From: Bugula neritina
Lineage: Eukaryota > Animalia > Bryozoa
Assembly: GCA_964035545.1 (NCBI GenBank)
Contig: CAXIUT010000291.1
Location: 15,463 to 79,462, forward strand
Length of the DNA stretch: 64,000 nucleotides
Reading direction: 5' to 3'
Part shown: piece after piece, positions 39,664-60,191 of the stretch
How the letters are laid out: every line of letters starts with the position of its first letter
Numbering within the stretch: the stretch's first letter is position 1
The notes under the pieces: generated by a model
Told to the model about the DNA's origin: nothing
Seen by the model: only the letters and a program-made list of their open reading frames with translations
Databases searched by the model: none
Position numbers and translations under genes: made by a program

Positions 39664-42600
39664 CTATTCCACGGTCACCTGATAAGACACAGTGCCCGAA
39701 GAACCCGGATTCAGCTTATCATTCACTGTCCACGCCCAGTCCAGACTGCCATCCGGGTTTTCATTGGTGGTACATAGCGGCAGTTCGGCGGGCTTGTCGG
39801 TACATAACATGCTTCCCTGAACGATTTCGGTGAATGCGGGTATCGCGTCATTAATTACCAGTTCATTAAGCGGGCCATTACCAATATTCCGGTAGCTGAT
39901 GGTATAGCGCAGGGTTTCGCCCGGTAGAACCACATTACCATCAATATTACGTGTCACGTTCCATACTGATTTGACCAAAGCCAGTTTGCCTTCACCAGCA
40001 ACGGGGTCAGGCGTACCGACCGGGTCAACCACAGGGTCAACCGGTGGTGCTGTTGTGGTTCCGGCGAGGCTACGGGTAATATTCTGATGGATTTGGCGGT
40101 TGTTCGTGAGGCCAAGGGAGTCATCTCCGTAGCTAAAGTCACTTTGGATGTCGATAACATGCATTGCGCCCGTGGTGGCGTTAGGCGGCGAAACCACCTT
40201 AACTAATACACAAACCCGTTGCCCGGCGGTTACATTGATACTGGCGGGCATGGCGCTATCGCCATTGGCGCTGCTCAGGCGGCCATCACAGTTAGCGTCT
40301 AATAATAGCTGGCGACCCCAGTTTAAGGTGGTGGGGTTAGCGTTTTCGGCGGCAATAGTGAAGCTGACGCTGCCATCGCTTTGAGCCGTGAAGATATGCG
40401 GGTGTAAGATCGCACTGTTCGGCAGGATGGTTTGTTCATTATCCAGCTCAAATGCCGGGGGTTTAATGTCGCCAAAGTTGAGGCCGCTGACATGTGTATT
40501 GCTAACGGTGAAGGTCACAGAATTATTAGCGGTGGTGGACAGATAGCCGCTGGGATCTCTGGCATTCGCCGGGTCACAGTGTTGTGGGTTCGGCGCAGAT
40601 TCACCGGCAGCTTCATATACCTGGTAATCCCCCGGTAGTACACGAGTAAACAGATAATCGCCGTTGGCATTAGTACGGGTACTGATACAGGTGTTGCTAT
40701 TGGTATCGTACAGCACGATAGCGACACCACCGATACCGGCTTCCGTCGCATCGTTGTTTGTGTTGGCATTGCTATCGTTAAATACCCGGCCACCCACATT
40801 AAAGCCACCCGGCTCGACGGTCAGCATATAATCCTCGACCTCGCCATCGTTGGCGGCGGTCGTGTGATCCAGTCCCGCCGTGGTTGACCAGCGGAAGCGG
40901 GCAAAGGTTGGGTTAGTGATAGCATTAAGTGGTACGGTGACCGGTATAGTGATAGAGCCATCGGTATCACCATCCTGTAAATCAATGGCAATCTGTTCGC
41001 CGCTATCCGTAAAGTCTCCGTCCCCGTTGAAATCAATCCAGCCTTGCAGGTAGCCGTTTGCACCATTGACGGTGGCTGTGATGTCAGCGCTTTTACCCTG
41101 AGTTAGGGTGGGTATATTGATACCATTATCATCATTCGCACCATCGCTATCATCGCCATCGGCGTTGGGGGATGCCTGGTTGGCACTGTCCGCATCCGGT
41201 GTAGTTGAGCCGAGGTAGATGCTACTGATAATGGCGTGACTGGCTGCACCATAGGTATTGGTGTTGCTACCGTTGGGTGCTGAGCCTGACACCGGAGCGT
41301 CGCCGTAATCAGTGATAATGGTACAAACCGCAGGCACTTCGAGATTCCGACAGTAATTATTGTCATCAACACCGCCCCAGCCGAAGTTGGTGAATTGGTT
41401 AGCGGGTCGGGTTCCGGCTGAATTAGGTAACACGTTAAACGGGTCACTATTTTCGATTAGCGCTACTTGTCCCAGACAGGCTCCGGTGTTCTCAAAACTA
41501 AATACTTCCTGTTCGACCCCGGTCTGCCAGTTAAAGGCGGCTGCGTTAGAGGCTGCGAGACTGAAGGACAGATAATCGACACTGGTATCTTCGGGCGGAG
41601 CATCTTGCCGTGAGTCGAAGCTCCACGCGGTTCCGGTAATGGAACTTTGAATATCCTGTGGGATAAACTGAGAAATTCCGGTTGCCGTAGGAACACGTAT
41701 TGTCACCTGTCCGGTCGAGCTGAGGTCGGGCGACGGTACGCTATTAGGTGTCATAAAGACCCGGTAGCGCCGGTTCACATCGTCCCAGCGAATAGTGTAG
41801 TCGAGTTCGCAGCCAGCAGGCTGTACCTCGAAAACCCTTAAGCTATAATCCTCGACCTCGCCATCACTGGTTGTGGTCGTGTGATCCAGCCCCGCCGTGG
41901 TTGACCAGCGGAAGCGGGCAAAGGTCGGATTAGTGGTGGTGGAAGAGGGCGGCGTGACGTTAAAGGTAATCGTGCCATCGCTGGCGGTTGTATCGTCGGC
42001 GTTGCCATCATCCTGTAAATCGGTGGCTACCTGTTCGCCCGCCTCAAAGGTACCGTTACCATTCCAGTCAATCCAGCCCTGTAGGTAACCACCGGCACCA
42101 CTAACGGTAGCGGTAATGGTTGCCACCGTACCCTGAGTGAGGGTCGGGATACTGATACCATCGTCGTCATCCGTGCCATCGTTGTCGTCACCCTCTGCGC
42201 TGGGGCTGGCCTGATTGGCACTGTCAGCATCCGGCGCGGCGCTACCGAGGTAGGTGCTGCTCACGATATTATGACTGGCTTCACCATAACTATTGGTGCT
42301 GCTGCCATCCGGCGCTGTGCCTGATACCGGCGCATCACCATAATCCATACTACTGGTACAGGCGGCGGGTAGTTCGAGATTCTGGCAGTAGTTATTGTCA
42401 TTCGCACCGCCCCAGCCCAGATTGGTGAACTGGTTCCCCGGTCGGTTACCAACTGAATTCGGGGAGATATTAAACGGATCGCTGTCCTCGAACAGTGCTA
42501 CATCACCGAGACAGGCTCCGCCATTCTCAAAGCTGAACACTTCCTGTTCGACACCGCTCTGCCAGTTAAAAGCACTGGCTGTTGAGGCCGCGAGGCTGAA

Positions 42601-45600
42601 TGACAGGTAATCGGCCGTATTATCTTCGGTTGGTGCGTCGGCGCGTGAACTCTGACTCCAGGTGGTACCGGTGATCGGGTTTTGAATATCCTGGGCGACA
42701 AAGCGACCAGCTCCGGTGGCGGTGGGTACACGAATGGTCACCTGACCGGTCATACTGAGGTCAGGCGAAGGCGTCCGGTTCGGCGTCATAAAGACACGGT
42801 AGCGCGCATTCGCGGCATCCCAGCGAATAGTGTAGTCGAGCGCACAACTGTCGGCCTGTGCGGTCACCGTTAAGCGGTAGTCCTCGACCTCGCCATCGCT
42901 GGTTGTGGTCGTGTGATCCAGCCCCGCCGTGGTTGACCAGCGGAAGCGGGCAAAGGTCGGATTAGTGGTCGCGGAAGAGGGCGGCGTGACGTTAAAGGTA
43001 ATCGTGCCATCACTAGCGGTTGTATCGTCGGCGTTGCCATCATCCTGTAAGTCGGTGGCGACCTGTTCGCCCGCATCAAAAGCACCGTTACCATTCCAGT
43101 CAATCCAGCCCTGTAGGTAACCACCGGCACCACTCACGGTAGCGGTAATGGTTGCCACCGTACCCTGAGTTAGCGTCGGGATACTGATACCATCGTCGTC
43201 ATCCGTGCCATCGTTATCATCACCCTCTGCGCTGGGGCTGGCCTGATTGGCACTGTCAGCATCCGGCGCGGCGCTACCGAGGTAGGTGCTGCTCACGATA
43301 TTATGACTGGCTTCACCGTAACTATTGGTGCTGCTGCCATCCGGCGCTGTGCCTGATACCGGCGCATCACCATAATCCATACTACTGGTACAGGCGGCGG
43401 GTAGTTCCAGATTCTGGCAGTAGTTATTGTCATTTGCACCGCCCCAGCCCAGATTGGTGAACTGGTTACCTGGTCGGTTACCAACTGAATTCGGGGAGAT
43501 ATTAAACGGATCGCTGTCCTCGAACAGTGCTACATCACCGAGACAGGCTCCGCCATTCTCAAAGCTGAACACTTCCTGTTCAACACCGCTCTGCCAGTTA
43601 AAAGCACTGGCTGTTGAGGCTGCGAGGCTGAATGACAGGTAATCGGCCGTATTATCTTCGGTTGGCGCATCCGCCCGTGAACTCTGACTCCAGGTGGTAC
43701 CAGTGATCGGGTTTTGAATATCCTGGGCGACAAAGCGATCCGCTCCGGTGGCGGTGGGGACGCGTATGGTCACCTGACCGGTCATACTGAGGTCAGGCGA
43801 AGGCGTCCGGTTCGGCGTCATAAAGACACGGTAGCGCGCATTCGCTGCATCCCAGCGAATAGTGTAGTCGAGCGCACAACTGTCGGCCTGTGCGGTCACC
43901 GTTAAGCGGTAATCCTCGACCTCGCCATCACTGGCGGCAGTAGTACTATCCAGCCCCTGTGTCGCGGACCAGCGGAAGCGGGCAAAGGTCGGATTAGTGG
44001 TGGCGGAAGAAGGCGGCGTGACGTTAAAGGTAATCGTGCCATCGCTGGCGGTTGTATCGTCGGCGTTGCCATCATCCTGTAAATCGGTAGCGACCTGTTC
44101 GCCCGCCTCAAAAGCACCGTTACCATTCCAGTCAATCCAGCCCTGTAGGTAGCCGCCGGCACCACTAACGGTAGCGGTAATAGTAGCCACCGTATCCTGA
44201 GTTAGCGTCGGGATATTGATACCATCATCGTCATTCGTACCATCGTTGTCGTCACCCTCCGCGCTGGGGCTGGCCTGATTAGCACTGTCAGCATCCGGCG
44301 CGGCGCTACCGAGGTAGGTGCTGCTCACGATATTATGACTGGCTTCACCATAACTATTGGTGCTGCTGCCATCCGGCGCTGTGCCTGATACCGGCGCATC
44401 ACCATAATCCATGCTGCTGCTACAAGCGGCGGGTAGTTCCAGATTCTGGCAGTAGTTATTGTCATTTGCACCGCCCCAGCCCAGATTGGTGAACTGGTTA
44501 CCCGGTCGGTTACCGACTGAATTCGGGGAGATATTAAACGGATCGCTGTCCTCGAACAGTGCCACATCACCGAGACAGGCTCCGCCATTCTCAAAGCTGA
44601 ACACTTCCTGTTCGACACCGCTCTGCCAGTTAAAAGCACTGGCTGTTGAGGCCGCGAGGCTGAATGACAGGTAATCGGCCGTATTATCTTCGGTTGGTGC
44701 GTCGGCGCGTGAACTCTGGCTCCAGGTGGTACCGGTGATCGGGTTTTGAATATCCTGGGCGACAAAGCGATCCGCTCCGGTGGCGGTGGGTACACGAATG
44801 GTCACCTGACCGGTCATACTGAGGTCGGGCGAAGGCGTCCGGTTCGGCGTCATAAAGACACGGTAGCGCGCATTCGCTGCATCCCAGCGAATAGTGTAGT
44901 CGAGCGCACAACTGTCGGCCTGTGCGGTCACAGTTAAGCGGTAATCCTCGACCTCGCCATCACTGGCGGCAGTAGTACTATCCAGCCCCTGTGTCGCGGA
45001 CCAGCGGAAGCGGGCAAAGGTCGGATTAGTGGTGGTGGAAGAAGGCGGCGTGACGTTAAAGGTAATCGTGCCATCGCTGGCGGTTGTATCGTCGGCGTTG
45101 CCATCATCCTGTAAATCGGTAGCGACCTGTTCGCCCGCATCAAAGGTACCGTTACCATTCCAGTCAATCCAGCCCTGTAGGTAACCACCAGCACCACTCA
45201 CCGTAGCGGTAATAGTAGCCACCGTACCCTGAGTTAGCGTCGGGATACTGATACCATCATCATCATTCGTACCATCGTTATCATCACCCTCTGCGCTGGG
45301 GCTGGCCTGATTGGCACTGTCAGCATCCGGCGCGGCACTACCGAGATAGGTGCTACTTACGATAGTGTGACTGGCTTCACCATAACTATTAGTACTACTG
45401 CCATCCGGCGCTGTGCCTGATACCGGCGCATCACCATAATCCACGCTGCTGCTACAGGCGGCGGGTAGTTCCAGATTCTGGCAGTAGTTATTGGCGCTAA
45501 ATGCGCCCCAGCCCAAATTAGTGAACTGGTTGCCTGGTCGGTTGCCGGCTGAATTTGGGAAGACATTAAACGGATCACTGTTCTCTAGCAGTGCCACATC

Positions 45601-48600
45601 ACCGAGGCAGGCTCCGCCATTTTCGAAGCTGAACACTTCCTGTTCGACGCCGCTCTGCCAGTTAAAGGCCGCCACGTTGCTGGCCGCGAGGCTGAATGAG
45701 AGGTAATCGGCGCTGGTATCTTCGGTCGGTGCATCCGCCCGTGAACTCTGGCTCCAGGCGGTACCGGTGATCGGGTTTTGAATATCTTGTGCCACAAAGC
45801 GATCCGCTCCGGTGGCGGTGGGTACACGAATGGTCACCTGGCCGGTCATACTAAGGTCGGGTGAAGGCGTCCGGTTTGGTGTCATAAAGACACGGTAGCG
45901 CGCATTCGCTGCATCCCAGCGAATAGTGTAGTCGAGCGCACAACTGTCGGCTTGTGCGGTCACCGTTAAGCGGTAATCCTCGACCTCACCGTCACTGGCG
46001 GCAGTAGTACTATCCAGTCCCTGCGTCGCGGACCAGCGGAAGCGGGCAAAGGTCGGATTAGTGGTCGCGGAAGAGGGCGGCGTGACGTTAAAAGTAATCG
46101 TGCCATCGCTGGCGGTTGTATCGTCGGCGTTGCCATCATCCTGTAAATCGGTGGCGACCTGTTCGCCCGCCTCAAAAGCACCGTTACCATTCCAGTCAAT
46201 CCAGCCCTGTAGGTAACCACTGGCACCACTCACGGTAGCGGTAATAGTAGCCACCGTACCCTGGGTTAGGGTTGGGATACTGATACCATCATCATCATTC
46301 GTACCATCGTTGTCGTCACCGTCGGCACCGGGACTGGCCTGACTGGTGCTATCAGCATCCGGCGCAGCGCTACCGAGATAGGTGCCGCTCACGATAGTGT
46401 GACTGGCTTCACCATAACTATTAGTACTGCTGCCATCCGGCGCTGTGCCCGATACCGGCGCATCACCGTAATCCATGCTGCTGCTACAAGCGGCGGGTAG
46501 TTCGAGATTCTGACAGTAGTTATTGTCATTTGCACCGCCCCAGCCCAGATTGGTGAATTGGTTACCCGGTATTGTATTGGCTGAATTCGGGAAGACATTA
46601 AACGGATCACTGTTCGCCAGTAACGAGACATCACCGAGGCAGGCTCCGCCATTTTCGAAGCTGAATACTTCCTGCTCGACACCGGTCTGCCAGTTAAAGG
46701 CTGCCACGTTGTTGGCCGCGAGGCTGAATGAGAGGTAATCGGCCGTATTATCTTCGTTCGGTGCGTCGGTGCGTGAATTCTGACTCCAGGTGGTACCAGT
46801 GATCGGGTTTTGCAGATCCTGGGCCACAAAGCGATCAGCTCCGCTCGCGGTGGGGACGCGTATGGTTACCTGACCGGTCAGACTGAGGTCAGGCGAAGGT
46901 GTCCGGTTCGGCGTCATAAAGACACGGTAACGTGCATTCGCGGCATCCCAGCGAATAGTGTAGTCGAGCGCACAACTGGCAGCTTGTGCGATCACTGCTA
47001 AGCGGTAATCCTCCACTTCACCGTCACTGGCGGCGGTGGTGCTATCCAGCCCCTGTGTCGCGGACCAGCGGAAGCGGGCAAAGGTCGGATTAGTTGTTGC
47101 GGAAGAGGGCGGCGTGACGTTAAAGGTAATCGTGCCATCGCTGGCGGTTGTATCGTCAGCGTTGCCATCATCCTGTAAATCGGTGGCGACCTGTTCGCCC
47201 GCCTCAAAAGCACCGTTACCATTCCAGTCAATCCAGCCCTGTAGGTAACCACCGGCACCACTCACCGTAGCGGTAATAGTAGCCACCGTGCCCTGGGTTA
47301 GGGTCGGGATACTGATACCATCATCATCATTCGTACCATCGTTATCGTCACCCTCTGCGCTGGAGCTGGCCTGATTGGCACTGTCAGCATCCGGCGCGGC
47401 GCTACCGAGATAGGTGCCGCTCACGATAGTGTGACTGGCTTCACCGTAACTATTAGTACTGCTGCCATCCGGCGCTGTGCCTGATACCGGCGCATCACCG
47501 TAATCCACGCTGCTGCTACAAGCGGCGGGTAGTTCGAGATTCTGACAATAGTTATTGTCATTTGCACCGCCCCAGCCCAGATTGGTGAACTGGTTACCCG
47601 GTATTGTATTGGCTGAATTCGGGAAGACATTAAACGGATCACTGTTCGCCAGTAACGAGACATCACCGAGGCAGGCTCCGCCATTCTCGAAGCTGAATAC
47701 TTCCTGCTCGACACCGCTCTGCCAGTTAAAGGCTGCCACGTTGTTGGCCGCCAGGCTGAACGAGAGGTAATCGGCCGTATTATCTTCGTTCGGTGCGTCG
47801 GTGCGTGAATTCTGACTCCAGGTGGTACCAGTGATCGGGTTTTGCAGATCCTGGGCCACAAAGCGATCCGCTCCGCTCGCGGTGGGGACGCGTATGGTTA
47901 CCTGACCGGTCAGGCTGAGGTCAGGCGAAGGTGTCCGGTTCGGCGTCATAAAGACACGGTAACGTGCATTCGCTGCGTCCCAGCGAATAGTGTAGTCGAG
48001 TGCGCAACTGGCAGCTTGTGCGATCACTGCTAAGCGGTAATCCTCCACTTCACCGTCACTGGCGGCGGTGGTGCTATCCAGTCCCTGCGTCGCGGACCAG
48101 CGGAAGCGGGCAAAGGTCGGATTAGTGGTGGCGGAAGAGGGCGGTGTGACGTTAAAGGTAATCGTGCCATCGCTGGCGGTTGTATCGTCAGCGTTGCCAT
48201 CATCCTGTAAATCGGTGGCGACCTGTTCGCCCGCCTCAAAGGCACCGTTACCATTCCAGTCAATCCAGCCCTGTAGGTAACCACCAGCACCACTTACCGT
48301 AGCGGTAATAGTAGCCACCGTGCCCTGGGTTAGCGTCGGGATATTGATACCATCGTCATCATTCGTACCATCGTTATCGTCACCGTCGGCACCGGGACTG
48401 GCCTGACTGGTGCTATCAGCATCCGGCGCAGCGCTACCGAGATAGGTGCCGCTCACGATAGTGTGGCTGGCTTCACCGTAACTATTGGTGCTGCTGCCAT
48501 CCGGCGCTGTGCCCGATACCGGCGCATCACCGTAATCCATGCTGCTGCTACAAGCGGCGGGTAGTTCGAGATTCTGACAGTAGTTATTGTCATTTGCACC

Positions 48601-49644: not shown

Positions 49645-49687
49645 GTTTACCCACTATTATATTTATAATTTAGTCTGATTATTATTA

Positions 49688-49745
49688 CAGTAACGTGTAT
49701 GAAAGGCTTACACCCCGACGGGATGTAAGTCTTCGACTTACACAG
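49688..49745. repeat. Dispersed REP-like element, copy 3
   Basis: CAGTAACGTGTATGAAAGGCTTACACCCCGACGGGATGTAAGTCTTCGACTTACACAG. Confidence 0.75.
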
Positions 49746-49794
49746 CAAGCAGTGTGACAAAATTTACAGCGGGCAAAGCCCCCACACACTTGTA

Positions 49795-50394
49795 CTACGA
49801 ACAGCTAAGCGCTGCGCCGTAATTGCCGAGGTAATTATTACTTTCCACTGTGCCCCAGCCAATATTAGTGAACTGGTTACCCGGACGCGTACCGGCTGAA
49901 TTGTCTGGCACATTAAACGGGTCATCATCATCCATCAGGCGGACATCCGACACACAACCCCCCGAATTACGGAAAGAAAATATCAGTTTTTCCTCGTCCG
50001 CCTCCCATTGGTAGAAGTTGGCGTCACCCGTTAGGCCGACATAGGAGAAGGAAATATAATCGTATTCAGGATTTTCTTCCGGTGCGTCCACACGCGCCGT
50101 TTCCACCCAGCTGGCATCGCCGACATAGTTTTGTACGTCTTCCGCCTGGAACAGGCTATCACCGGGAACCCGGATAGTTAGCTGGCCGGTAAGGCTAAGG
50201 TCGGGTTTCGGTAGTACCGTTGGTTTCATCCAGACCTCATATGTTTCGCCATCATCCGCCAGCGCCAGTTTGTACTCAAGTACCTGTTCGCTGTCGTCTG
50301 CGTTATCCGTTGCGCTGGCTGTACCTATACAACAAGCCAGTAATACACCACCAGCCAGTGGCAGTGTTTGAGGTATAAATTTGGCTATTTTCAT
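49795..50394 (-). CDS. Small secreted protein: a single stand-alone copy of the domain repeated in the 3326-aa protein
   Basis: Signal peptide; LEY...YEVWMKP..PDLSLTGQLTIRVP...RVDAPEEN..DYISF...FSFRNSGGC...DPFN...GNQFTNIGWG aligns by eye along its full length. Confidence 0.9.
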   Translation of the reverse strand: MKIAKFIPQTLPLAGGVLLACCIGTASATDNADDSEQVLEYKLALADDGETYEVWMKPTVLPKPDLSLTGQLTIRVPGDSLFQAEDVQNYVGDASWVETARVDAPEENPEYDYISFSYVGLTGDANFYQWEADEEKLIFSFRNSGGCVSDVRLMDDDDPFNVPDNSAGTRPGNQFTNIGWGTVESNNYLGNYGAALSCS

Positions 50395-50428
50395 GAATCT
50401 CTCTTATTATTTTTTATTTATGGGCTTA

Positions 50429-50486
50429 GCTATTTCTCTTCCCCCCTACGCTAACCGAAAGGGTCGTATAGGGGGGAGAGAATAGC
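50429..50486. other. Long intergenic hairpin
   Basis: GCTATTTCTCTTCCCCCCTACG...CGTATAGGGGGGAGAGAATAGC. Confidence 0.65.
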
Positions 50487-50511
50487 AATTAGTTAGGACT
50501 CATTGATTGTA

Positions 50512-53500
50512 TTAAGGAGTCACTATTTGGTCCATACCTCCGATTAGAATAAAGTTAGCTGCAAAGACACTATTATTTGGATGTAACAAGACATTAGCTA
50601 ACATAATGTTAATATCATTGTCCGCACCGGCAAATATTGTCATACCATCCATGTTGAGGTCAGTACTAAGGTAACCATGCAGTACGTAGTTGGAGTTAAA
50701 GTACGCTGCGTTACCCGGCGCTGTTAGTACATTACCCAGCACACTGTTCGCATCATTACTGACACCGTAAGCAATGGCAGTTTGATCCTGGTTAGCATCT
50801 CCGGCCCACATGAGTCTAATGCTACCCGCTTCCAGTCGCGCCGGATTCGCTGTGCTATCGCCCATTGCCTGTGTAGTTGGCAACGTGAAATCAACCATCG
50901 TGGTGGTAGCGCTCAGACTAACCGGGTTTTCCGTCATCACACCCGGATGGTTCCGGTGGCGTACGCTAACGTGGTAATCAGCATCCGCGACACCGTAGAA
51001 CGTGATAGTGTCATCACCCGTAGCCGCATTCGCCAGATCACCATCGCGTTGTACCATGACCGCGTAACTGGCTTCGATGGTCGTTGGGTCGGCCGCATTA
51101 CGCAGTTCCAGCAACACCCAATCCACGACATCATCTTCTATATAAGCCGCGTCGGCGACTACCGCCGTACTGAGGGTCTCGGTTCCATCATGACCAAAGG
51201 GTGCTTCGCCATACGGATGCGCCGTCGGTAACAGCTCGCTGGTACGTAGCGTATCATTCATTAGGCCAAGACTGCTGTCGTAGGCCCCCTGTAGATAAGT
51301 ACGCACCTGGAGCTTAACCATTGCTGCGCCGGCAAGCGGAGTCACAATGTCATTGTAGCCATCAGCCGGAGCTACATCTGTTGGCACCGCAAGGGTTTCA
51401 TCAGATTCATCACCGTTGTTAATACCATCGTTATCATAGTCCAGGCTACCATCCGGCGTTCCGTCGGTTGTTTCCGGGTCTAACGGATCGGTACCGACTA
51501 ATGCTTCGTCCGCGTCACTAACGCCGTCGCCGTCGTCATCGGTATCGGTCGCATCCGGTATTCCGTCATTATCGAAATCATTATCCATATAATCCGGAAC
51601 ACCATCACCGTCGGCATCAGGACAGGTATAACCATTCGGACATTCAGCATCGTCATCGACACCATCGCCATCCGCATCACCCGCGCCCGCTGTTTCATCA
51701 TTCGGGTCAAGGTGCGCCGGGATACCGTCGCCATCGTTGTCTTTCCAGATACCGGTTTCCACGCCACCCTGCTCGCCGCCGGTACCATCAGTACCTTCAC
51801 CGTCGCCATCAGCGTTGTCGTCGTTGTGATCCGTCGCGCCGTCACCATCGGTGTCGAGTATGTTGGATTCCAGACGATCCGGGATACCATCGTTATCGGT
51901 ATCGGTCGTACCTTCCGTTGCATCCGGCGTACCGTCACCGTCGGAGTCAGTATCCATGTAATCCGGGATACCATCGCCATCGGAGTCAGGACAGATATAG
52001 CCATTCGGACATTCAACGTCGTCGTCGATACCGTCGCCATCCGCATCACCCATACCCGCTGTTTCATCATTCGGGTCAAGGTGCGCCGGGATACCGTCGC
52101 CATCGTTGTCTTTCCAGGGGCCTTCTAACACACCGGCCTGTTCGCCGCCGGTACCATCTGTACCTTCGCTATCGCCGTCAGCATCGTTGTCGTCGAAATC
52201 GAAGTAACCATCACCATCGGTGTCGAGTATGTTGGATTCCAGTCGATCCGGAATACCGTCACCGTCTTCGTCGGTGGTGCCTTCGTCTACATCTGAGATG
52301 CCATCGTTATCGTCGTCGGTGTCGGTTATATCCGGAATGCCGTCGCCGTCACTGTCGATGAGATCCGGTGTATCCATGTAATCCGGGATACCATCACCAT
52401 CGGAGTCAGGACAGGTATAGCCATTCGGACATTCAACGTCGTCGTTGATACCATCGCCATCCGCATCACCCGCGCCAGCCGTGTTGTCATTCGGGTCAAG
52501 GTGCGCCGGGATACCATCGCCATCGTTGTCGTTCCAAACACCGGTTTCCACGCCATCCTGCTCGCCGCCGGTACCATCAGTACCTTCACCGTCGCCATCA
52601 GCGTTGTCGTCGTTGTAATCCTTCGCGCCGTCACCATCGGTGTCGAGTATGTTGGATTCCAGACGATCCGGGATACCATCGTTATCGGTATCGGTCGTAC
52701 CTTCCGTTGCATCCGGCGTACCGTCACCGTCGGAGTCAGTATCCATGTAATCCGGGATACCATCGCCATCGGAGTCAGGACAGATATAGCCATTCGGACA
52801 TTCAACGTCGTCGTCGATACCGTCGCCATCCGCATCACCCATACCCGCTGTTGCATCATTCGGGTCAAGGTGCGCCGGGATACCGTCGCCATCGTTGTCG
52901 TTCCAGATACCGGTTTCTACGCTATTCTGCTCGCCGCCGGTACCATCAGTACCTTCGCTGTCGCCATCAGCGTTGTCGTCGTTGTAATCCATCGCGTTGT
53001 CACCATCGGTGTCGAGTATGTTGGATTCCAGACGATCCGGGATACCATCGTTATCGGTATCGGTCGTACCTTCCGTTGCATCTAATATACCGTCACCGTC
53101 GGAGTCAGTATCCATGTAATCCGGGATACCATCACCATCGGAGTCAGGGCAGATGTAACCATTCGGACATTCAACGTCGTCGTCGATACCGTCGCCATCC
53201 GCATCACCCATACCCGCTGTTGCATCATTCGGGTCAAGGTGCGCCGGGATACCGTCGCCATCGTTGTCGTTCCAGGGGCCTTCTAACACACCGTCCTGTT
53301 CGCCGCCGGTACCATCCGTACCTTCGCTATCGCCGTCAGCATCGTTGTCGTCGAAATCGAAGTTACCATCACCGTCGGTGTCGAGTATGTTGGATTCCAG
53401 TCGATCCGGAATACCGTCGCCATCGGTGTCGGTGGTGCCTTCGTCTACATCTGAGATGCCATCGTTATCGTCGTCGGGGTCGGTTATATCCGGAATGCCG

Positions 53501-56500
53501 TCGCCGTCACTGTCGATGAGATCCGGTGCATCCATGTAATCCGGGACACCATCACCATCGGAGTCAGGACAGATATAGCCATTCGGACATTCAACGTCGT
53601 CGTTGATACCATCGCCATCCGCATCACCCGCGCCAGCCGTGTCGTCATTCGGGTCAAGGTGCGCCGGGATACCGTCGCCATCGTTGTCGTTCCAGGGGCC
53701 TTCTAAAACACCGTCCTGTTCGCCGTTATTGCCATTATCACCATCGTCTCCTTCAATGTCACCGTCAGCATTGCTGTCGTTGAAATCGAAGTTACCGTCA
53801 CCGTCGGTGTCGATAATGTTGGATTCAATGCGATCCGGAATACCGTCACTATCGGTGTCGGTGGTGCCTTCGTCTACATCTGAGATGCCATCGTTATCGT
53901 CGTCGGGGTCGGTTGCGTCCGGAATGCCGTCGCCGTCACTGTCGACATTAGCTCCACCCCGGAAATCAACTTCGGGGCTGTAGGCGTCAACATTAAGTAA
54001 GCCGTCGCTGCTGCCCAGCGGATCATTCACACTGCCATCAGGATCAGCATAGGTCGGCGCGGTCGCTACGGCGCTTCCGCCTTCGTCGGCGTCGGATATA
54101 CCGTCACCATCGCTGTCCGGATCCAAATAGTCGGGCGTCGTATCAGCCGTGTCGTTGGCATCGGCGTTGGCCGTGTTGGCCCCTGCGATAAAGGCGTTGT
54201 TCGATTCGCCGGTTGCAAAGCCAACGCCAGCGGTAGCGGTATCGTAGATATCAAGGATACCGTCATCGTCGCTGTCGGCGGCGTCATCGGTGCCAGCGTA
54301 AGCGACGTAATAAGTCGATGCGCGAGCTTCGGTCGCATCGCCGATACCATCATCGTCACTATCCAAGTCGAGATAGTCAGCCAGATCGTCACCAGCCGTG
54401 TTGAAGCTGTCAACGGGGGCTGTACCGATAGAGTCGGCAGCTGTATTTCCAGTTGAGATGTCAGCATCAAAGATATCCATCAGGCCATCGCCATCGGCAT
54501 CAGCAACACCGCCATTGGCAGCGGCAGCTTCAGCAGCGGAGATTGTCCCGTCGTTGTTGGTGTCGGCTGCGATTAGAGCCGCCGTTGCACCACTTTCAAC
54601 CAGGTCGCTGATTCCGTCGTTGTCACTGTCGAGATCCTCATGGTTGCTGATACCGTCACCATCGGTGTCAAGAAACCCTGCTGAACTACCAGAGCTACTA
54701 CTGCTACTACTACTGCCGCTACCACTACTCAGGCCATAGTCCTGGTCAGTAAAAGTCTCAATGACCTGACCACCAAAATTCATGTGTATCCCTGAGAGCA
54801 ATACCGTCGGCATACCGAGTAGTTCGTAGTTCCCATTCCCGTCCGTTACCAAGGCAAAAGTATCGTAATGTGATTGAATTGCACCAATCAAATCAGGCGT
54901 GGTAAAAGAAGAGACGTCTAATGAAACCGCATCATTATTGATAAACAGCTGGTCATTTGTGTAGTCAGCACGCATCAGATATGCTGATGTTATACCTGTA
55001 TCAATGTCTTCAATGTCTGTTCCGGCTATGTGCAACGTGGCATCGGTACCAGCGCTATTAGCCGTGAATGTATTGCCAGCCGAATCAAGAATAAAGGGGG
55101 GGCCTTGTACTGGATTAACAATATCAACAGCTGTACCGCTGAAGTTAGGATCGGTTATCACGAGCTGGGTAACGGGAATTGGGGCTGCGGTGGCATTAGA
55201 TAGCCACGTCCAAAGCGTACCGTCGTCTTTTAACGCGATAGCCCGCTGGGTATACGGATAGGCGCTAAAATTGTCGCTGATTTGAACGACACCCGAGCCC
55301 AAGCCCGTAAACTCAGCCACTGTGCCAGTCGAATCAACGGGTGCAGTATAGACCGTGCCATCTGCTCGGAAAGCGTAAAAACTCCCAGTCCCGCCACCAC
55401 CAGAAACCGAGACGAAGTCTTTATTCTCCGCTCCAGTGTATAGTGCTGCCGCATCTGTTCCAATGGTAGTGGAGGTCATTGGAAGGCGCATGATTCGGCC
55501 ATCATCTAACAAGAGCGCGGCATTGCCGTGGTCTGCGGTAACAGACGTGACCTTGGCGCCGGTTGGGATCCCAATAATTGGCACGGGATTACCAGCGGGG
55601 TCTCTTATCACACGACCATATAAGTTGCCATCGGTACCGATCATGAGTGCATGAGATTCAATCGAAAAGAAGGTCTCAAAGGTGATCCCATTACTGGCCG
55701 AATTGGTCCAGTCAGCCGTCGTAACTCTGTCCCTGAATCGGGTTATCGTACCGTCGGTCATGAGGACAACGTGCCCCTCTCGTCCGTCTTCAGCATAAGC
55801 GCCTGCATTCGGCCCCATTAATGCGGTAAAAATGTCACTGGCATTTATTTCGGAAGGTGCCTCTACACTATCCAGAATCCCATCGTTGTCAGCGTCGATG
55901 TCGCTGGCGTCGGGAACGCCGTCGCCGTCGGAGTCGGCTACGCTACGGAAATCAACTTCGGCGCTGTCGGCGTCAACATTAAGTAAGCCGTCGCTGCCGC
56001 CCAGCGGATCATTCACACTTCCATCAGGATCAGCATAGGTCGGCGCGGTCGCTACGGCGCTTCCGCCTTCGTCGGCGTCGGTTATGCCGTCACCATCGCT
56101 GTCCGGATCCAAATAGTCGGGCGTCGTATCAGCCGTGTCGTTGGCATCGGCGTTGGCCGTGTTGGCCCCGGCGATAAAGGCGTTGTTCGATTCGCCGGTT
56201 GCAAAGCCAACGCCAGCGGTAGCGGTATCGTAGATATCAAGGATACCATCATCGTCGCTGTCGGCCGCGTCATCGGTGCCAGCGTAAGCGACGTAATAAG
56301 TCGATGCGCGAGCTTCGGTCGCATCGCCGATACCATCATCGTCACTATCCAAGTCGAGATAGTCAGCCAGATCGTCACCAGCTGTGTTGAAGCTGTCAAC
56401 GGGGGCTGTACCGATAGAGTCGGCAGCTGTATTTCCAGTCGAGATGTCAGCATCAAAGATATCCATCAGGCCATCGCCATCGGCATCAGCAACACCGCCA

Positions 56501-59500
56501 TTGGCAGCGGCAGCTTCAGCAGCGGAGATTGTCCCGTCGTTGTTGGTGTCGGCTGCGATTAGAGCCGCCGTTGCACCACTTTCAACCAGGTCGCTGATTC
56601 CGTCGTTGTCACTGTCGAGATCCTCATGGTTGCTGATACCGTCACCATCGGTGTCAAGAAACGCTGCTGAACTACCAGAGCTGCTACTACCACTACCGCT
56701 ACCTCCGCTCAGGCCATAGTCCTGGTCGGTAAAAGTCTCAATGACCTGACCACCAAAATTCATGTGTATCCCTGAGAGCAATACCGTCGGCATACCGAGT
56801 AGTTCGTAGTTCCCATTCCCGTCCGTTACCAAGGCAAAAGTATCGTAATGTGATTGAATTGCACCAATCAAATCAGGCGTGGTAAAAGAAGAGACGTCTA
56901 ATGAAACCGCATCATTATTGATAAACAGCTGGTCATTTGTGTAGTCAGCACGCATCAGATATGCTGATGTTATACCTGTATCAATGTCTTCAATGTCTGT
57001 TCCGGCTATGTGCAACGTGGCATCGGTACCAGCGCTATTAGCCGTGAATGTATTGCCAGCCGAATCAAGAATAAAGGGGGGGCCTTGTACTGGATTAACA
57101 ATATCAACAGCTGTACCGCTGAAGTTAGGATCGGTTATCACGAGCTGGGTAACGGGAATTGGGGCTGCGGTGGCATTAGATAGCCACGTCCAAAGCGTAC
57201 CGTCGTCTTTTAACGCGATAGCCCGCTGGGTATACGGATAGGCGCTAAAATTGTCGCTGATTTGAACGACACCCGAGCCCAAGCCCGTAAACTCAGCCAC
57301 TGTGCCAGTCGAATCAACGGGTGCAGTATAGACTGTGCCATCTGCTCGGAAAGCGTAAAAACTCCCAGTCCCGCCACCACCAGAAACCGAGACGAAGTCT
57401 TTATTCTCCGTTCCAGTGTATAGTGCTGCCGCATCTGTTCCAATGGTAGTGGAGGTCATTGGAAGGCGCATGATTCGGCCATCATCTAACAAGAGCGCGG
57501 CATTGCCGTGGTCTGCGGTAACAGACGTGACCTTGGCACCGGTTGGGACCCCAATAATTGGCACGGGATTACAACTGGGTCTCTTATCACACGACCATAT
57601 AAGTTGCCATCGGTACCGATCATGAGTGCATGAGATTCAATCGAAAAGAAGGTCTCAAAGGTGATCCCATTACTGGCCGAATTGGTCCAGTCAGGCCGTC
57701 GTAACTCTGTCCCTGAATCGGGTTATCGTACCGTCGGTCATGAGGACAACGTGCCCGTCTCGTCCGTCTTCAGCATAAGCGCCTGCATTCGGCCCCATTA
57801 ATGCGGTAAAAATGTCACTGGCATTTATTTCGGAAGGTGCCTCTACACTATCCAGAATCCCATCGTTGTCAGCGTCGATGTCGCTGGCGTCGGGAACGCC
57901 GTCGCCGTCGGAGTCGGCTACGCTACGGAAATCAACTTCGGCGCTGTCGGCGTCAACATTAAGTAAGCCGTCGCTGCCGCCCAGCGGATCATTCACACTG
58001 CCATCAGGATCAGCATAGGTCGGCGCGGTCGCTACGGCGCTTCCGCCTTCGTCGGCGTCGGACACGCCGTCACCATCGCTGTCCAGATCCAAATAGTCGG
58101 GCGTCGAATCAGCCGTGTCGTTGGCATCGGCGTTGGCCATGTTGGCCCCGGCAATAAAGGCGTTGTTCGATTCACCGGTTGCAAAGCCAACTCCGGCGGT
58201 AGCGGTATCGTAGATATCAAGGATACCGTCATCGTCGCTGTCGGCGGCGTCATCGGTGCCAGCGTAGGCGACGTAGTCGGTTGAAGCGCGAGCTTCGGTC
58301 GCATCGCCGATACCGTCGTTGTCGCTATCTAGGTCGAGGTAATCAGGCGTGCCATCGGCCACCGTTTCACTATCGACCGGAGCGGTTCCAATTGATGCGG
58401 CATCTGAACTGTCTGCTTTGTCAGCATCGAACAGATCCATCAAGCCATCGCCGTCGGCGTCGGCAACGCCTGTTCCGCCATTAGCCAGATCATAGGCTAT
58501 AGCTTCAGCATCGGAGATTGTCCCGTCGTGGTTGGTGTCAGCTGCGATTTGAGCCGCCGTTGCACCACTTTCAACCAGGTCGCTGATCCCGTCGTTGTCA
58601 CTGTCCAGGTCAGCATGGTTGCTGATGCCGTCACCATCGGTGTCAAGGAAGCCTGCTGAACTAACAGAGCTGCTACTGCCGCTGCTACCGCTACCGCTGC
58701 TTAGGTCATAGTCCTGATCGGTAAAGGTCAGAAGGACCTGATCAGGAATAATATGTGCCGATGAAAGACCCAGCGTTCCTATGCCGAGTAGTTCGTAGTT
58801 CCCATTACCGTCCGTTACCACGGCCAGCGTATCTGAATGGAGTTGAATGGCACCGACCAAATCGGGCGTACTGAAAGAAGATATGGCTAGTGAAACCGTC
58901 GTCTCATCAACGAAAAGCTGGTCATTGGTGTAGTCAGCACGCAACAGAAATCGTGTGTGACCCATGTCAATGTCTTCAATGCCTGTACCGGCTATGTGCA
59001 ACGTGGCATCGGTACCAGCAAGATTAACCTCAAACGTATTACCAGCCGAATCAAGAACATACACAGTCCCGGTTGTTGTGGCCGTAACATCAACCACCGG
59101 ACCGCTGAAGTTAGTATCGGTGACCGTGAGCTGAGTAGCGGTAATTGGCTGTGAAGTAGCGGTAGGATCCCATGTGAAAACAGTACCGTCATCTTTTAAT
59201 GCGACAGCTCTACCTCTGGTAGCATCAGTAATTTTCGTAACACCCGAACCCAGGGTTGTAAACTCCTCCACTGTGCCTGTTGTAGTAGCGGGTGCTGTAT
59301 AAACCGTGCCATCTGCCCGGAAGGCATAGAAATTCCATTCACGCCACCACCAGCAACAGAGACGAACCCTGTATTATCCGCTCCGTTATACAGTGCCGCT
59401 GGTGCATTAGAGACATTGAAGGGTAGTGGAAGGCGCATCATTCGACCATCATCTAGCAAGAGCGCGGCATTTTTGTCGTCAGCGGTAACCGAAACGACCC

Positions 59501-60191
59501 TGGTGCCAGTTGGAATCCCTGTAACGACAGTGAAGCGAGCAGCATTCATTCCTATTTCATGGTAATAAAAATTTCCATCGCTACCATTCGCGAATACGTG
59601 AGCTTCATGTGAAAAGACGTCTTCAAAGGTAATCCCATTAGTGGCCGAATTAGTCCAGTCAGTAATTACAGACTGTACCACCACTCGCGTTAGCTCGCCG
59701 TTGGGCGTGCGGAAGACAATTCCTGCGGCACCGTCTTCACCATAAACGCCTGCATTCGCTCCCATTAATGCGGTAAAAATTGCATTGGCATCCGGAGCGG
59801 CCGGAGCCTCTGTACTATCCAAAATACCGTCGTTGTCAGCGTCGATGTCGCTGGCGTCGGGAACGCCGTCGCCGTCGGAGTCGGTACTATTAGCCTCTGC
59901 CGCCGGTACCAACGTTTCCAGAATACCCACATAACGCGAATGAAACCCGGAAGAAGAATCAAATAAACCACCCGCCGCTGTTAGCGACAACATCATAACG
60001 AATACAATGCCGAAAAAAGACGCTAAGATGGAGGAGAGTCCGGGCGGACTCCCGGTTCGTCGCCTTTTTCGCTCTCTTGATACTCTATTGAAAGGCGGGG
60101 ATGCCTGCTGTGGGTGAGAATATGACTGAGTGTTATCCGGGGTTGTATCGTGACCGCCCATAGGAATGTGTGATTTTTCTCGTTGGCTCAT
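50512..60191 (-). CDS. ~3200-aa surface protein split into three ORFs by frameshifts: three 660-aa modules, Asp-rich Ca-binding (TSP3-like) repeats, C-terminal beta domain plus dockerin-like module
   Basis: ORFs 59196-60191, 57691-59271 and 50512-57564 join through indels at ~59340, ~57694 and ~57572, seen by comparison with the intact repeat copy; many DxDxDGIPD motifs; C-terminal GDANQD and DLNMDG loops. Confidence 0.85.
51500..53945 (-). repeat. Six Asp/Gly-rich units of ~369 or ~420 bp, each containing ECPNGY(I/T)CPD
   Basis: CATTCGGACATTCA recurs at ~51634, 52002, 52422, 52791, 53160 and 53580. Confidence 0.9.
53960..59890 (-). repeat. Three copies of a ~1980-bp (660-aa) module; two near-identical, one divergent
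   Basis: For example 55004 vs 56984 and 55832 vs 57812 give identical shadow ORFs 1980 bp apart. Confidence 0.93.

Follow-up and report, generated by a model that had tools for sequence, protein, structure and literature searches.

A candidate cohesin/X-module-dockerin-like docking locus in a Thiolinea-like member of the Thiotrichaceae

When a 64,000-nucleotide stretch of DNA (the window) was analyzed, three adjacent genes (A, B and C) were found to carry two divergent modules resembling cohesins and X-module-dockerin dyads. We propose, with a probability of roughly 55 %, that the locus is a very divergent, non-cellulosomal cohesin/X-module-dockerin docking system. The host is a Thiolinea-like member of the Thiotrichaceae, a sulfur-bacterium relative. 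A ~165-aa domain, named CohL here, would be the socket, and the C-terminal 272 aa of gene A (CTM) would be the plug, in which an X-module-like beta-sandwich is packed on two dockerin-like Ca loops with their helices. Gene C would offer nine sockets on one secreted polypeptide, with a GEVED domain after all but the first, and gene B would be a free socket. As the only plug-bearer of the genome, gene A would encode a Ca-stiffened giant with RCC1-like and TSP3-like parts, several copies of which would be displayed, probably to build a matrix or sheath or for adhesion. Such plug-and-socket construction of giant surface structures is, to our knowledge, undescribed in Gram-negative filamentous bacteria.

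The locus and its three genes

Genes A (50512-60191), B (49795-50394) and C (39664-49644) lie on the minus strand, co-oriented as the first-pass annotation had described, with intergenic gaps of 117 and 150 nt; all features of these genes given below are on the same strand. The flanking genes are housekeeping genes, and the long housekeeping genes of the window (RNase E and an 1148-aa Aas-like fusion) are intact. In the same window, galT and galK are frame-broken. The contig sits in a 216-Mb assembly, other windows of which read as eukaryotic, and relatives are present in sequencing runs labelled 'symbiont metagenome'. The system also extends beyond Gammaproteobacteria, to Bacteroidota and Chloroflexota.

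An MsbA-like ABC exporter is encoded at 4559-6421, 44 kb from the locus, and no RTX or hemolysin-type family was matched when the locus proteins were searched in Pfam and NCBIfam. An RTX or type I-secreted giant adhesin was rejected, as no RTX family was recognised, the C-terminus is CTM and the neighbours are housekeeping genes. A cellulosome was likewise rejected, as neither a dockerin-borne glycoside hydrolase nor a cellulose-binding scaffoldin was found and the flanks are housekeeping; no CAZyme or CBM family was detected in genes A-C with Pfam and NCBIfam, in agreement with the earlier observation that no glycoside hydrolase is recognisable.

Gene A encodes a giant acidic protein (Asp+Glu content 20-22 %) with 82 D-x-[DN]-x-D-G motifs. 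It had been described as a single ~3200-aa Ca-repeat gene with a duplicated C-terminal loop-helix module; the length (3207 aa in total) and the C-terminus were right, but the gene is present as three ORF pieces and not as one (59196-60191, 331 aa; 57691-59271, 526 aa; 50512-57564, 2350 aa). A long basic N-terminal stretch precedes a hydrophobic segment (59958-60035, read from the translation), which is presumed to be a signal peptide or signal anchor. Three large repeats of ~660 aa (1980 nt) each follow at 53908-59834, and each combines an RCC1-like module (~326 aa) with a Ser/Gly linker and an Asp-rich, TSP3-like region. Identity is ~98 % between repeats 2 and 3, and ~78 % between repeat 1 and either of them. 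The RCC1-like module may be beta-propeller-like, RCC1_2 being a lead only (ESM Atlas feature search, 0.91-0.93, low recognition). A thrombospondin-type-3-like Ca-binding repeat array was placed at 51340-53967 from the translation and motif positions; it holds six copies of a Cys-containing ECPNGY-x-CPD unit, and the TSP3_bac match of gene A (23.8 bits) is under the Pfam cut-off of 25.

When gene A was compared with its intact third large repeat, three single-base indels were located (near 59334-59337, 57694 and 57571). Break 1 (59334-59337) lacks one base that the other repeats have, and it is probably an assembly error, because a contig from one short-read run (depth 2.56) matches 58990-59500 exactly save for one extra base there. 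Breaks 2 and 3 (57571-57695) consist of an extra base at 57694/57695 and the loss of a base at 57571-57573, and a stop codon lies in between. The sole contig of that run that removes both equals repeat 3 (6 mismatches and 2 gaps); its differences are those between repeat 2 and repeat 3, and it is therefore uninformative on repeat 2. Every break is a single base in a 2-nt run, as expected of long-read consensus errors.

These breaks could also be taken as signs that the locus, in a host-associated bacterium, is decaying into pseudogenes and no longer makes a functional system. Damage in galT and galK, the eukaryotic-looking windows elsewhere in the assembly and the symbiont-labelled relatives would fit such decay. 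We regard it as very improbable, since the 10-kb gene C, gene B, RNase E and the Aas-like fusion are all intact, one of the three breaks is contradicted by an independent short-read contig, and all three have the pattern of long-read consensus errors.

Gene B encodes a signal peptide (~aa 1-29) and one CohL (aa 36-199), which bears out the earlier view of a 199-aa protein made of one ~165-aa domain. Its CohL is 43-45 % identical to the copies in gene C. The product of gene C (3326 aa) is a scaffold-like secreted protein with a signal peptide, nine CohL, eight GEVED, SdrD_B and DUF11/CLIPPER domains. Nine CohL copies were counted both with our own HMM and by an independent search of the assembly itself. 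The whole array extends over 41317-49632 (HMM coordinates), with copies 1-3 at 49057-49632, 48544-49050 and 47512-48066, copies 4-6 at 46480-47034, 45448-46014 and 44416-44982, and copies 7-9 at 43384-43950, 42352-42918 and 41317-41898. Among copies 2-8, which have a period of 1032 nt, identity is 85-99 %; copies 1 and 9 share 58-75 % identity with the other copies.

GEVED (PF20009) scored 365.4 bits in gene C against a cut-off of 24.4, in eight stretches. The eight domains (40831-48535 from Pfam and motif positions; ~175 aa each) start with a DYGDAP motif and close with a GEVED motif, and one is found after each of CohL copies 2 to 9. The number of nine copies thus agrees with the first description, but the supposed GEVED spacer is a real ~175-aa domain and is absent between copies 1 and 2, which are adjacent. 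C-terminal stalk-type domains occupy 39667-40800, namely SdrD_B (40597-40800; Pfam E-value 7.5e-16) and DUF11/CLIPPER (about 39667-39957; DUF11 at 26.1 bits, cut-off 24.6; TIGR01451), and the stretch between these two has no domain assignment. CLIPPER is an isopeptide stalk domain (10.1101/2025.04.25.650565). Domain searches of gene C revealed no recognised anchor and no CTM, and the sorting signals CHU_C, Por_Secre_tail and IPTL-CTERM are absent from all three window genes.

Folds of CohL and CTM

A total of 69 full-length CohL homologues were found with E-values from 1e-65 to 1e-37, and 516 CohL clusters were found among 1.84 billion representatives. Given these counts, CohL is, as judged from sequence, a family far above chance. 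Cys147 and Cys198 are invariant, and the motif N-S-x-x-T-N-P-G-N-Q-F-T-N-L-G-W-G is conserved. When gene B and the first gene C copy were searched in Pfam with E-values up to 10, no family was matched, Cohesin (PF00963) included, and a PDB sequence search with the CohL profile also gave no match.

The AF2 model of CohL from gene B has a pLDDT of 76, with strands above 90. When it was compared with 48,161 PDB representatives using VIA, the top 13 rows were all cohesins with Z-scores of 8.6-7.1, middling values in a range (7-8.6) that models without a true match often reach. The alignments covered 114-141 residues with an rmsd of 3.2-4.9. The leaders were 2vo8 (Z 8.6), 6kgc (8.1) and 3ul4 (7.8), and 2xdh was among the top seven; Gram-positive pilin domains appeared among the lower matches (Z ~6). 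The top rows of Foldseek were CBM3 modules and cohesins. An ESM Atlas shape search found Bacteroidota proteins of 220 and 302 aa (TM 0.64), the latter with a T9SS sorting domain, and several Pfam Cohesin-bearing clusters at TM ~0.5. A cohesin-type beta-sandwich is thus predicted for CohL, and the argument for it is the consistency of the family and not the score. This agrees with the fold proposed earlier for the repeated domain. A cadherin, Ig or lectin fold was rejected, as the structure searches were headed by cohesins instead.

The genes could also be read as encoding ordinary fibrillar adhesins or surface proteins. CohL would then be an adhesive ligand-binding tip (for a carbohydrate, host or sheath surface), and CTM would be a surface-retention or export module that binds, e.g., sheath polysaccharide or LPS; the modules would not bind each other and would be found together through their service in one surface pathway. 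A ligand-binding CohL also fits because the gene C copies precede GEVED, which is described as the invariable downstream partner of the adhesive CshA_NR2 domains at adhesin tips (PMC10952558) and follows eight of the nine copies. CBM3 and CBM2-type modules have the same fold and appear among the CohL matches, and the strongly conserved Asn/Gly/Trp-rich motif could be a sugar site. However, cohesins rank above the CBMs in the VIA search, and CTM, as described next, specifically matches X-dockerin dyads, modules that mediate protein-protein contacts. We consider the adhesin reading somewhat unlikely, also in view of the linkage and the predicted complex given below.

In the case of CTM, the first part (CTM residues 1-174; 50809-51330) is an X-module-like beta-sandwich and the second part (50515-50808) is a dockerin-like duplicated Ca-loop and helix. 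Two segments of the form D-x-N-x-D, G-x-x-N-D and helix are found in the second part at residues 175-202 and 223-248, with putative Ca-loops at 50782-50808 and 50638-50664 (from sequence) and model helices at 50725-50757 and 50587-50619 (residues 193-202 and 239-248). The Asp/Asn/Gly positions of the loops are invariant or nearly so among 39 sequences, and the loops exceed the canonical dockerin length by 4 residues. CTM would thus carry the dockerin hallmark of two tandem Ca-loop and helix segments at the C-terminus.

The predicted structure of CTM has a pLDDT of 94.8 and a pTM of 0.92. The best VIA matches in the PDB were 3kcp_A (Z 8.9, 148 aligned, XDoc part 155-310 of the chain) and 5g5d_B (Z 8.5, 150 of 156 residues). 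These dyad matches span model residues 2-270, and the next, unrelated row has a Z-score of 5.1. The Foldseek top list consisted mostly of type II XDoc chains (TM by target 0.47-0.58). In the model, the beta-sandwich X-module is packed on the dockerin-like part, which is the hallmark of type II dyads. The dockerin-like ending suspected in the first-pass annotation is thus matched by known dyads.

No match was found in Pfam for the last 279 aa of gene A with E-values up to 10, Dockerin_1 (PF00404) included, nor for CTM among PDB sequence profiles, nor for Dockerin_1 in two Thiotrichaceae genomes (G001 and G002). A 1155-aa Saprospiraceae protein (L092:525-3992) has a CTM-type X-module (hhalign 100 %, E-value 4e-47, CTM positions 4-187) and, following it, Pfam Dockerin_1 (24.0 bits against a cut-off of 22.9), which begins at a Ca loop aligned with the first CTM loop when positions are counted. 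In the ESM Atlas, 19 % of the members of a look-alike cluster have Dockerin_1. Homology of CTM with recognised dockerins is indicated through this intermediate protein.

Linkage and predicted binding

In the order of Thiothrix, CohL was found in 49 of 107 genomes and CTM in all 49 of these; the match counts of the two modules correlate (rho 0.64, not corrected for phylogeny). The modules are thus not independently distributed, as had been expected for a docking pair, and the Thiotrichales co-occurrence is to be read as a single evolutionary event, because it is essentially one clade. None of the 50 CohL-positive genomes lacks CTM. The genome-wide count suggested earlier gave nine CohL in gene C, and gene A as the sole CTM-bearing gene of the whole 216-Mb assembly. 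In 38 of 76 loci, from Pseudomonadota, Bacteroidota and Chloroflexota, no more than 10 kb separates CohL from CTM, and T. nivea and many other genomes share the order 'CTM giant, free CohL of ~200 aa, protein with CohL at its start'. Folds, domain architectures, co-occurrence and this conserved gene order are the parts of the proposal that we consider established.

Among the best 150 CohL representatives, 136 have CohL at the N-terminus and 38 contain both modules; those other than gene C carry up to seven copies. CTM ends no more than 10 aa from the C-terminus in 37 of the 38 two-module proteins, and in 12 of them CohL is fused 3-11 aa ahead of CTM. Of the CohL proteins without CTM, 64 of 89 end in CHU_C (27), Por_Secre_tail (17) or IPTL-CTERM (20). 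CohL is therefore placed as cohesins are, in tandem on a scaffold and also on surface-anchored proteins. Both the lack of CohL without CTM and the direct fusions speak against the adhesin reading. In its favour, many Bacteroidia genomes have CTM but no recognisable CohL: among 251 sampled genomes, CTM was found in 26 and CohL in one. A broader CohL profile gave marginal matches only in five CTM-rich Bacteroidia genomes, and a Pfam Cohesin search of CTM-rich Bacteroidia genomes gave no match. CTM can apparently occur without a CohL partner, because 25 of the 26 CTM-positive genomes have no recognisable CohL.

A free CohL ORF of ~200 aa is present in nearly every CohL genome, and it is 50-60 % identical across its Thiotrichaceae homologues (Thiothrix, Thiofilum). 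Being the best-conserved member, the free ~195-aa protein could be the major subunit of a self-assembling surface layer, sheath lining or fibre, to which the large CohL proteins would be joined through CohL-CohL contacts with no part for CTM. The N-terminal position of CohL in most carriers and the pilin domains among the lower structural matches would be compatible with this. The tight CohL-CTM linkage and the direct fusions are left unexplained by such a lattice, and the match list is headed by cohesins and not by pilins; we hold self-assembly to be quite improbable.

A complex of gene B CohL (residues 36-199), CTM and 2 Ca was modelled. It reached an ipSAE of 0.48 (runs 0.49, 0.45 and 0.48) against 0.00 for the best of 3 controls, with a tool verdict of 'weak support', and 0.48 lies in a band where, according to the tool, predictions fail more often than not unless there is a good prior. 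Of 78 solved complexes, 51 reach the mark, as do 2 of 108 mismatched pairs; values up to 0.60 comprise 5 of the 78 solved complexes and all 4 mismatches (of 180) that passed. The runs share at least 98 % of contacts, and partner pLDDT is at least 88. The interface expected between the two modules thus passes the mark in prediction, at the level of 'weak support', and this separation from the controls is a further point against adhesins without mutual binding.

The earlier idea of cohesin-dockerin-like docking therefore stands for both folds and for the linkage, while the binding is a predicted one. Plug-socket binding, its need for Ca and the role of the assembly are what we infer from them. 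In relatives, a socket with a surface anchor (IPTL-CTERM in Proteobacteria, T9SS C-terminal domains in Bacteroidota) would hold the assembly on the cell, proteins with both socket and plug would act as adaptors or form head-to-tail chains, and others would be plug-only giants or enzymes. Up to nine giants on one scaffold had been proposed, but the architectures of relatives suggest chains as much as a nine-armed scaffold, because most of them join both modules in one protein.

A more specific form, which we regard as doubtful, is that CohL and CTM are an undescribed non-covalent head-to-tail docking kit for surface fibres. Proteins with N-terminal CohL and C-terminal CTM (38 of 150, such as a 1095-aa T. 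nivea protein) would polymerise socket-to-plug, CohL proteins with IPTL-CTERM or T9SS ends would form a base bound to the cell, giants that carry only a plug, like gene A, would be the tips, and the free CohL of ~195 aa would cap chains or chaperone plugs. The kit would be common to filamentous bacteria of three phyla (Thiotrichaceae, Saprospiraceae/Spirosomataceae and Caldilineaceae), and the organism of the window would be reduced to a scaffold of nine sockets with a single client, which might serve to attach it to a eukaryotic host.

Comparison with known systems

The docking system proposed here is closest to the type II cohesin/XDoc pairs of cellulosomes, in which the CipA XDoc of Clostridium thermocellum pairs with SdbA, OlpB or ScaC cohesins, and which include the ScaA XDoc of Acetivibrio cellulolyticus. 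PDB entries 2b59, 3kcp, 5g5d, 5k39 and 4u3s belong to this group. The top structural matches of CTM, and the only strong ones, are type II XDoc, and like them the CTM model has a beta-sandwich packed on a duplicated Ca-loop/helix. As in cellulosomes, CohL is a predicted cohesin-type beta-sandwich, and the candidate sockets are found in tandem on a scaffold and on surface-anchored proteins. In contrast, there is no detectable sequence similarity, the Ca loops exceed those of type II XDoc by 4 residues, and CTM has 272 aa against ~160. The hosts also differ, being Gram-negative bacteria and Chloroflexota. CohL proteins have IPTL-CTERM or T9SS domains as anchors instead of SLH or sortase, and the cargo would be a giant Ca-repeat protein instead of a glycoside hydrolase. 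CohL proteins with T9SS or IPTL-CTERM ends have the layout of anchoring scaffoldins; through these ends, 64 of the 89 CohL proteins without CTM resemble the T9SS- or IPTL-CTERM-sorted surface proteins of Bacteroidota and Proteobacteria, unlike the three window genes.

Non-cellulosomal cohesins and dockerins are a second comparison. The GH33/GH84 cohesins and X82-dockerins of Clostridium perfringens (PDB 2vo8, 2w1n and 2o4e) belong to this group, as does a cohesin of Archaeoglobus fulgidus (2xdh), and such modules are reportedly covered by the survey 'Noncellulosomal cohesin- and dockerin-like modules in the three domains of life'. They share with the present locus, as proposed, the assembly of secreted proteins unrelated to cellulose, and the top match of CohL, 2vo8, is among them. 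However, they are recognised by Pfam Cohesin and Dockerin_1, whereas CohL and CTM are not. We know of no counterpart in these systems to the 199-aa free socket, the nine-socket GEVED scaffold and the socket-plus-plug proteins.

Finally, gene C is like the CshA-type fibrillar adhesins in having a beta-sandwich followed by GEVED, with the stalk domains SdrD_B and DUF11/CLIPPER in the same protein. It differs from them in that CohL has no CshA_NR2 or other Pfam match, the CohL-GEVED unit is repeated eight times along the protein and not placed once at the tip, and CohL is genomically tied to a dockerin-like module.

Gene layout at the locus

Genes A, B and C were all found on the minus strand with intergenic gaps of 117 and 150 nt, in agreement with the co-orientation described in the first-pass annotation, and are flanked by housekeeping genes. 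TldD, which is encoded in the window, shares 96% identity with the protein of a Thiolinea sp. MAG and 83% with that of T. nivea, which identifies the bacterium as a Thiolinea-like member of the Thiotrichaceae. Relatives of the stretch (90-99% identity) were present in 2016 runs that carry the label 'symbiont metagenome', including one labelled as RNA-Seq, and the bacterium may live on or inside a eukaryotic host. Two AAA_14/DUF4143 ATPase genes (31326-32546 and 36415-37839) lie on either side of a gene for a 1148-aa Aas-like fusion of an MFS transporter, an acyltransferase and an AMP-binding enzyme (32685-36131).

Gene C (39664-49644, minus strand) is a single intact ORF of 3326 aa with a signal peptide. 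Nine copies of the ~165-aa CohL domain were counted both by a whole-assembly search and with a purpose-built HMM, the same number as had been read from the sequence earlier. Eight Pfam GEVED domains (PF20009, 365 bits) were also found, and SdrD_B and DUF11/CLIPPER domains lie at the C-terminal end. GEVED had been described as spacers between the CohL copies; its presence was confirmed, but it is a true domain of ~175 aa and none lies between copies 1 and 2. As copies 2-8 (41317-48066 region) are 85-99% identical with a period of 1032 nt, the array is young. The copy number of nine hinges on the assembly, and mis-assembly or cell-to-cell variation could affect it. Gene B (49795-50394, minus strand; 199 aa) consists of a signal peptide and one CohL copy, which shares 43-45% identity with the copies in gene C.

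Gene A (50512-60191, minus strand) is divided into three ORFs of 331, 526 and 2350 aa. Three large repeats of ~660 aa are followed by thrombospondin-type-3-like (TSP3) repeats and then by the last 272 aa, here called CTM. Each large repeat contains an RCC1-like module and an Asp-rich region. The ~326-aa module (54736-55713 and the two sister repeats) had no Pfam match; its resemblance to RCC1_2 beta-propeller clusters comes from a feature search of the ESM Atlas (scores of 0.91-0.93 at low recognition) and serves as a lead only. In total, 82 D-x-[DN]-x-D-G motifs were counted and acidic residues make up 20-22%. An RTX/T1SS adhesin was also considered and dropped, as neither such repeats nor such genes were found. 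Likewise, the cellulosome was dropped since CAZymes are absent from the locus, consistent with the earlier statement that no glycoside hydrolase was recognisable.

Each of the three frame breaks in gene A is a single base within a 2-nt run. A contig from the short-read run X1 equals the window over 58990-59500 except for one added base at 59334, which abolishes break 1 (at a low depth of 2.56). The contig that abolishes breaks 2 and 3 equals the third large repeat and thus says nothing about these breaks in the second, so that one of the three breaks was resolved by this check. The genes galT and galK (61320-63557) are also each in two frames with single-base breaks; the N-terminus of galT lies in a different frame upstream of the 61646 ORF and the start of galK in a different frame upstream of 62571, which points to indel errors of long reads or to decay of the genes. 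In contrast, the reading frame is unbroken in gene C and in several long genes. The T. nivea gene for a protein that combines two CohL domains with TSP3 repeats and CTM (L001:10650-12688) is broken into two ORFs (443 and 235 aa) precisely where CTM begins, thus the interruption of such genes is also seen in a finished isolate genome. For gene A, we consider long-read indel error a likelier cause than decay. A locus in decay, to which the broken frames could be ascribed, has to be set against the intact gene C and the resolved break 1, and was judged highly improbable.

Folds of CohL and CTM

When gene B and one gene C copy were searched, CohL had no match in Pfam or NCBIfam (E-values up to 10) or among PDB sequences, and the two profiles A1 (CohL) and A2 gave chance matches only against all PDB sequences (E 0.1-0.6). 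Full-length homologues (69 proteins of ~194 aa, 43-61% identity) have the source names Thiothrix, Thiofilum or Thiotrichaceae, and some carry the NCBI name 'cadherin'. Among 1.84 billion representatives, CohL was found in 516 clusters, where its one to seven copies mostly follow the signal peptide directly. Two Cys residues and an Asn/Gly/Trp-rich motif are invariant.

The AF2 model of CohL has a pLDDT of 76, with strands above 90. When it was compared with 48,161 PDB representatives by the structural search VIA, cohesins occupied the first 13 places (Z 8.6-7.1 over 114-141 aligned residues), Z values that models without a true match also often reach. Foldseek gave CBM3 modules and cohesins as weak top matches, and an ESM Atlas shape search gave small Bacteroidota proteins at TM 0.64, some with a T9SS sorting domain, together with several clusters labelled Pfam Cohesin at TM ~0.5. 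It is the convergence of the three structural searches on one family, rather than the Z values, from which we concluded that CohL has a cohesin-like fold. The first-pass annotation had named a cadherin fold of the gene B product as a competing outcome; this identity was dropped, as no cadherin model matched and the fold differs.

CTM also had no match in Pfam or NCBIfam at E-values up to 10, nor did its profile among PDB sequences. Its model (pLDDT 94.8, pTM 0.92) strongly matched only type II X-module-dockerin dyads (3kcp_A, Z 8.9; 5g5d_B, Z 8.5; next match Z 5.1), over model residues 2-270 and almost all of the 156-residue dyad, and Foldseek agreed. The C-terminal docking module proposed from the sequence is therefore recovered in the model, as an X-module with a dockerin-like part. 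The C-terminal third of CTM contains two segments of Ca-loop and helix, with loops four residues longer than those of canonical dockerins.

A Saprospiraceae protein of 1155 aa with G8 and a CEMIP beta-helix (L092:525-3992) contains the X-module of CTM, at an hhalign probability of 100% (E 4e-47), followed by Pfam Dockerin_1 above cut-off, which by our own position count starts at the loop aligned with the first CTM loop. This natural intermediate ties CTM to true dockerins. In addition, 19% of the members of an ESM Atlas cluster resembling CTM have Dockerin_1. In another Bacteroidota locus (L090:378-3971), CTM ends a fungalysin-type M36 protease that also has a MAM-like domain. CTM or the X-module with Dockerin_1 at enzyme C-termini may recruit enzymes in Bacteroidota much as in the cellulosome. 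The CohL/CTM family evades all sequence models while the folds persist.

Linkage of CohL and CTM across genomes

The 216-Mb assembly of the window (321 contigs) contains one CTM and ten CohL copies, all at this locus. Among the top 150 CohL representatives, 38 have CTM as well, and in 37 of the 38 it forms the very C-terminus; in 12 of these two-module proteins the fusion is direct, with CohL 3-11 residues ahead of CTM. A scan of one genome per species gave at least 591 CTM loci, in Thiotrichaceae, Bacteroidota (Saprospiraceae, Spirosomataceae, Lewinellaceae and others) and Caldilineaceae, and CohL lies within 10 kb of CTM in 38 of 76 kept loci, across all three phyla. The order of a CTM-ending giant, a free CohL of ~200 aa and a CohL-starting protein is repeated in T. 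nivea and many other genomes, and the triad in the window is a variant of it. Among 89 CohL proteins without CTM, most end in CHU_C (27), IPTL-CTERM (20) or Por_Secre_tail (17); with such surface-sorting C-termini, their layout matches that of anchoring scaffoldins.

Within the order of Thiothrix, CohL was found in 49 and CTM in 51 of 107 genomes, with CTM present in every one of the 49; the two genomes with CTM only are small (2.1 and 2.6 Mb). This co-occurrence counts as about one event because the genomes form essentially one clade. When 251 evenly sampled Bacteroidia genomes were searched, CTM was found in 26, some with dozens of candidates and with enzymes such as an M36 protease among the carriers. 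Co-occurrence, proposed earlier as a test, held for every CohL genome of the Thiothrix order; of the 26 Bacteroidia genomes with CTM, CohL was recognisable in only 1 and missing in 25. With profiles A1 and A4, a single clear match and two marginal ones were obtained in Bacteroidia, so that the broader profile A4 left the gap unfilled, and Pfam Cohesin was absent from the five CTM-rich Bacteroidia genomes searched. One of the marginal matches is a 253-aa protein (L089:710-1471, minus strand) that carries the T9SS signal Por_Secre_tail and is encoded directly downstream of a 392-aa CTM gene. Its N-terminal domain is weakly similar to CohL (A4, hhalign probability 74%, E 2.8e-5), and the protein is, on this sequence match, a suggestive candidate for the 'missing' socket.

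Thus, CohL depends on CTM, whereas CTM does not need a recognisable CohL; either further sockets exist or CTM has its own function. Both modules could also act independently within adhesins, with CohL binding a ligand and paired with GEVED as in the CshA adhesins, in which a ligand-binding domain is paired with GEVED (PMC10952558). The GEVED domains of gene C and the CTM-only genomes are compatible with such independence, while the fusions and the invariable presence of CTM beside CohL in the Thiothrix order favour pairing; we regard independent action as rather unlikely.

Proposed docking and comparison with known systems

The gene B CohL (residues 36-199) was co-folded with CTM and two Ca, alongside three controls. 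The ipSAE was 0.48 (runs 0.49, 0.45 and 0.48), which the method grades as 'weak support', and the best control reached 0.00; contact agreement between runs was at least 98% and partner pLDDT at least 88. The pair passed the mark, as do 51 of the 78 solved complexes and 2 mismatched pairs out of 108. Scores of 0.60 or lower belong to just 5 of those 78 complexes, yet to all 4 passing mismatches (of 180). The predicted complex was read as mild support for pairing because the folds and the linkage raise the prior. Beside such pairing, self-assembly of CohL as a structural subunit appeared improbable.

In the docking that we favour, gene A would use its X-dockerin-like plug to bind Sec-exported CohL modules, which serve as the sockets. 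As many as nine copies of this Ca-stiffened giant would be collected on gene C, and gene B would supply an unattached socket with the function of a cap, a chaperone or a competitor. Among relatives, proteins with socket and anchor, socket and plug, or plug only could build anchored chains. The folds, architectures and linkage were established by the analysis; the binding, its Ca dependence and stoichiometry, the surface location and the role (adhesion, matrix or sheath) are inferred. If the binding is true, names would become available for two large families whose proteins are now called 'hypothetical' or, wrongly, 'cadherin' or 'hemagglutinin', and a testable model would be available for the mounting of giant surface proteins in Thiothrix-type bacteria, possibly extending to sheath, holdfast or host attachment. 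Protein engineering would likewise gain additional orthogonal plug-socket pairs.

In Gram-positive anaerobes, cellulosomes are, by the textbook account, assembled through cohesin-dockerin docking. Beyond cellulosomes it is known chiefly from sequence surveys and a few structures, and non-cellulosomal modules are already a known idea; non-cellulosomal structures of C. perfringens and A. fulgidus were among our structural matches. Within the literature library that was searched, no paper joined cohesin or dockerin to Thiothrix, Thiotrichaceae, Saprospiraceae, Haliscomenobacter or Caldilineaceae, in line with the earlier remark that no characterised system was known in Gammaproteobacteria. Compared with known systems, the hosts of CohL and CTM are filament-forming Gram-negative bacteria and Chloroflexota, T9SS or IPTL-CTERM signals replace the SLH and sortase anchors of cellulosomes, the cargo consists of giant non-enzymatic surface proteins, and socket and plug are often in one chain.
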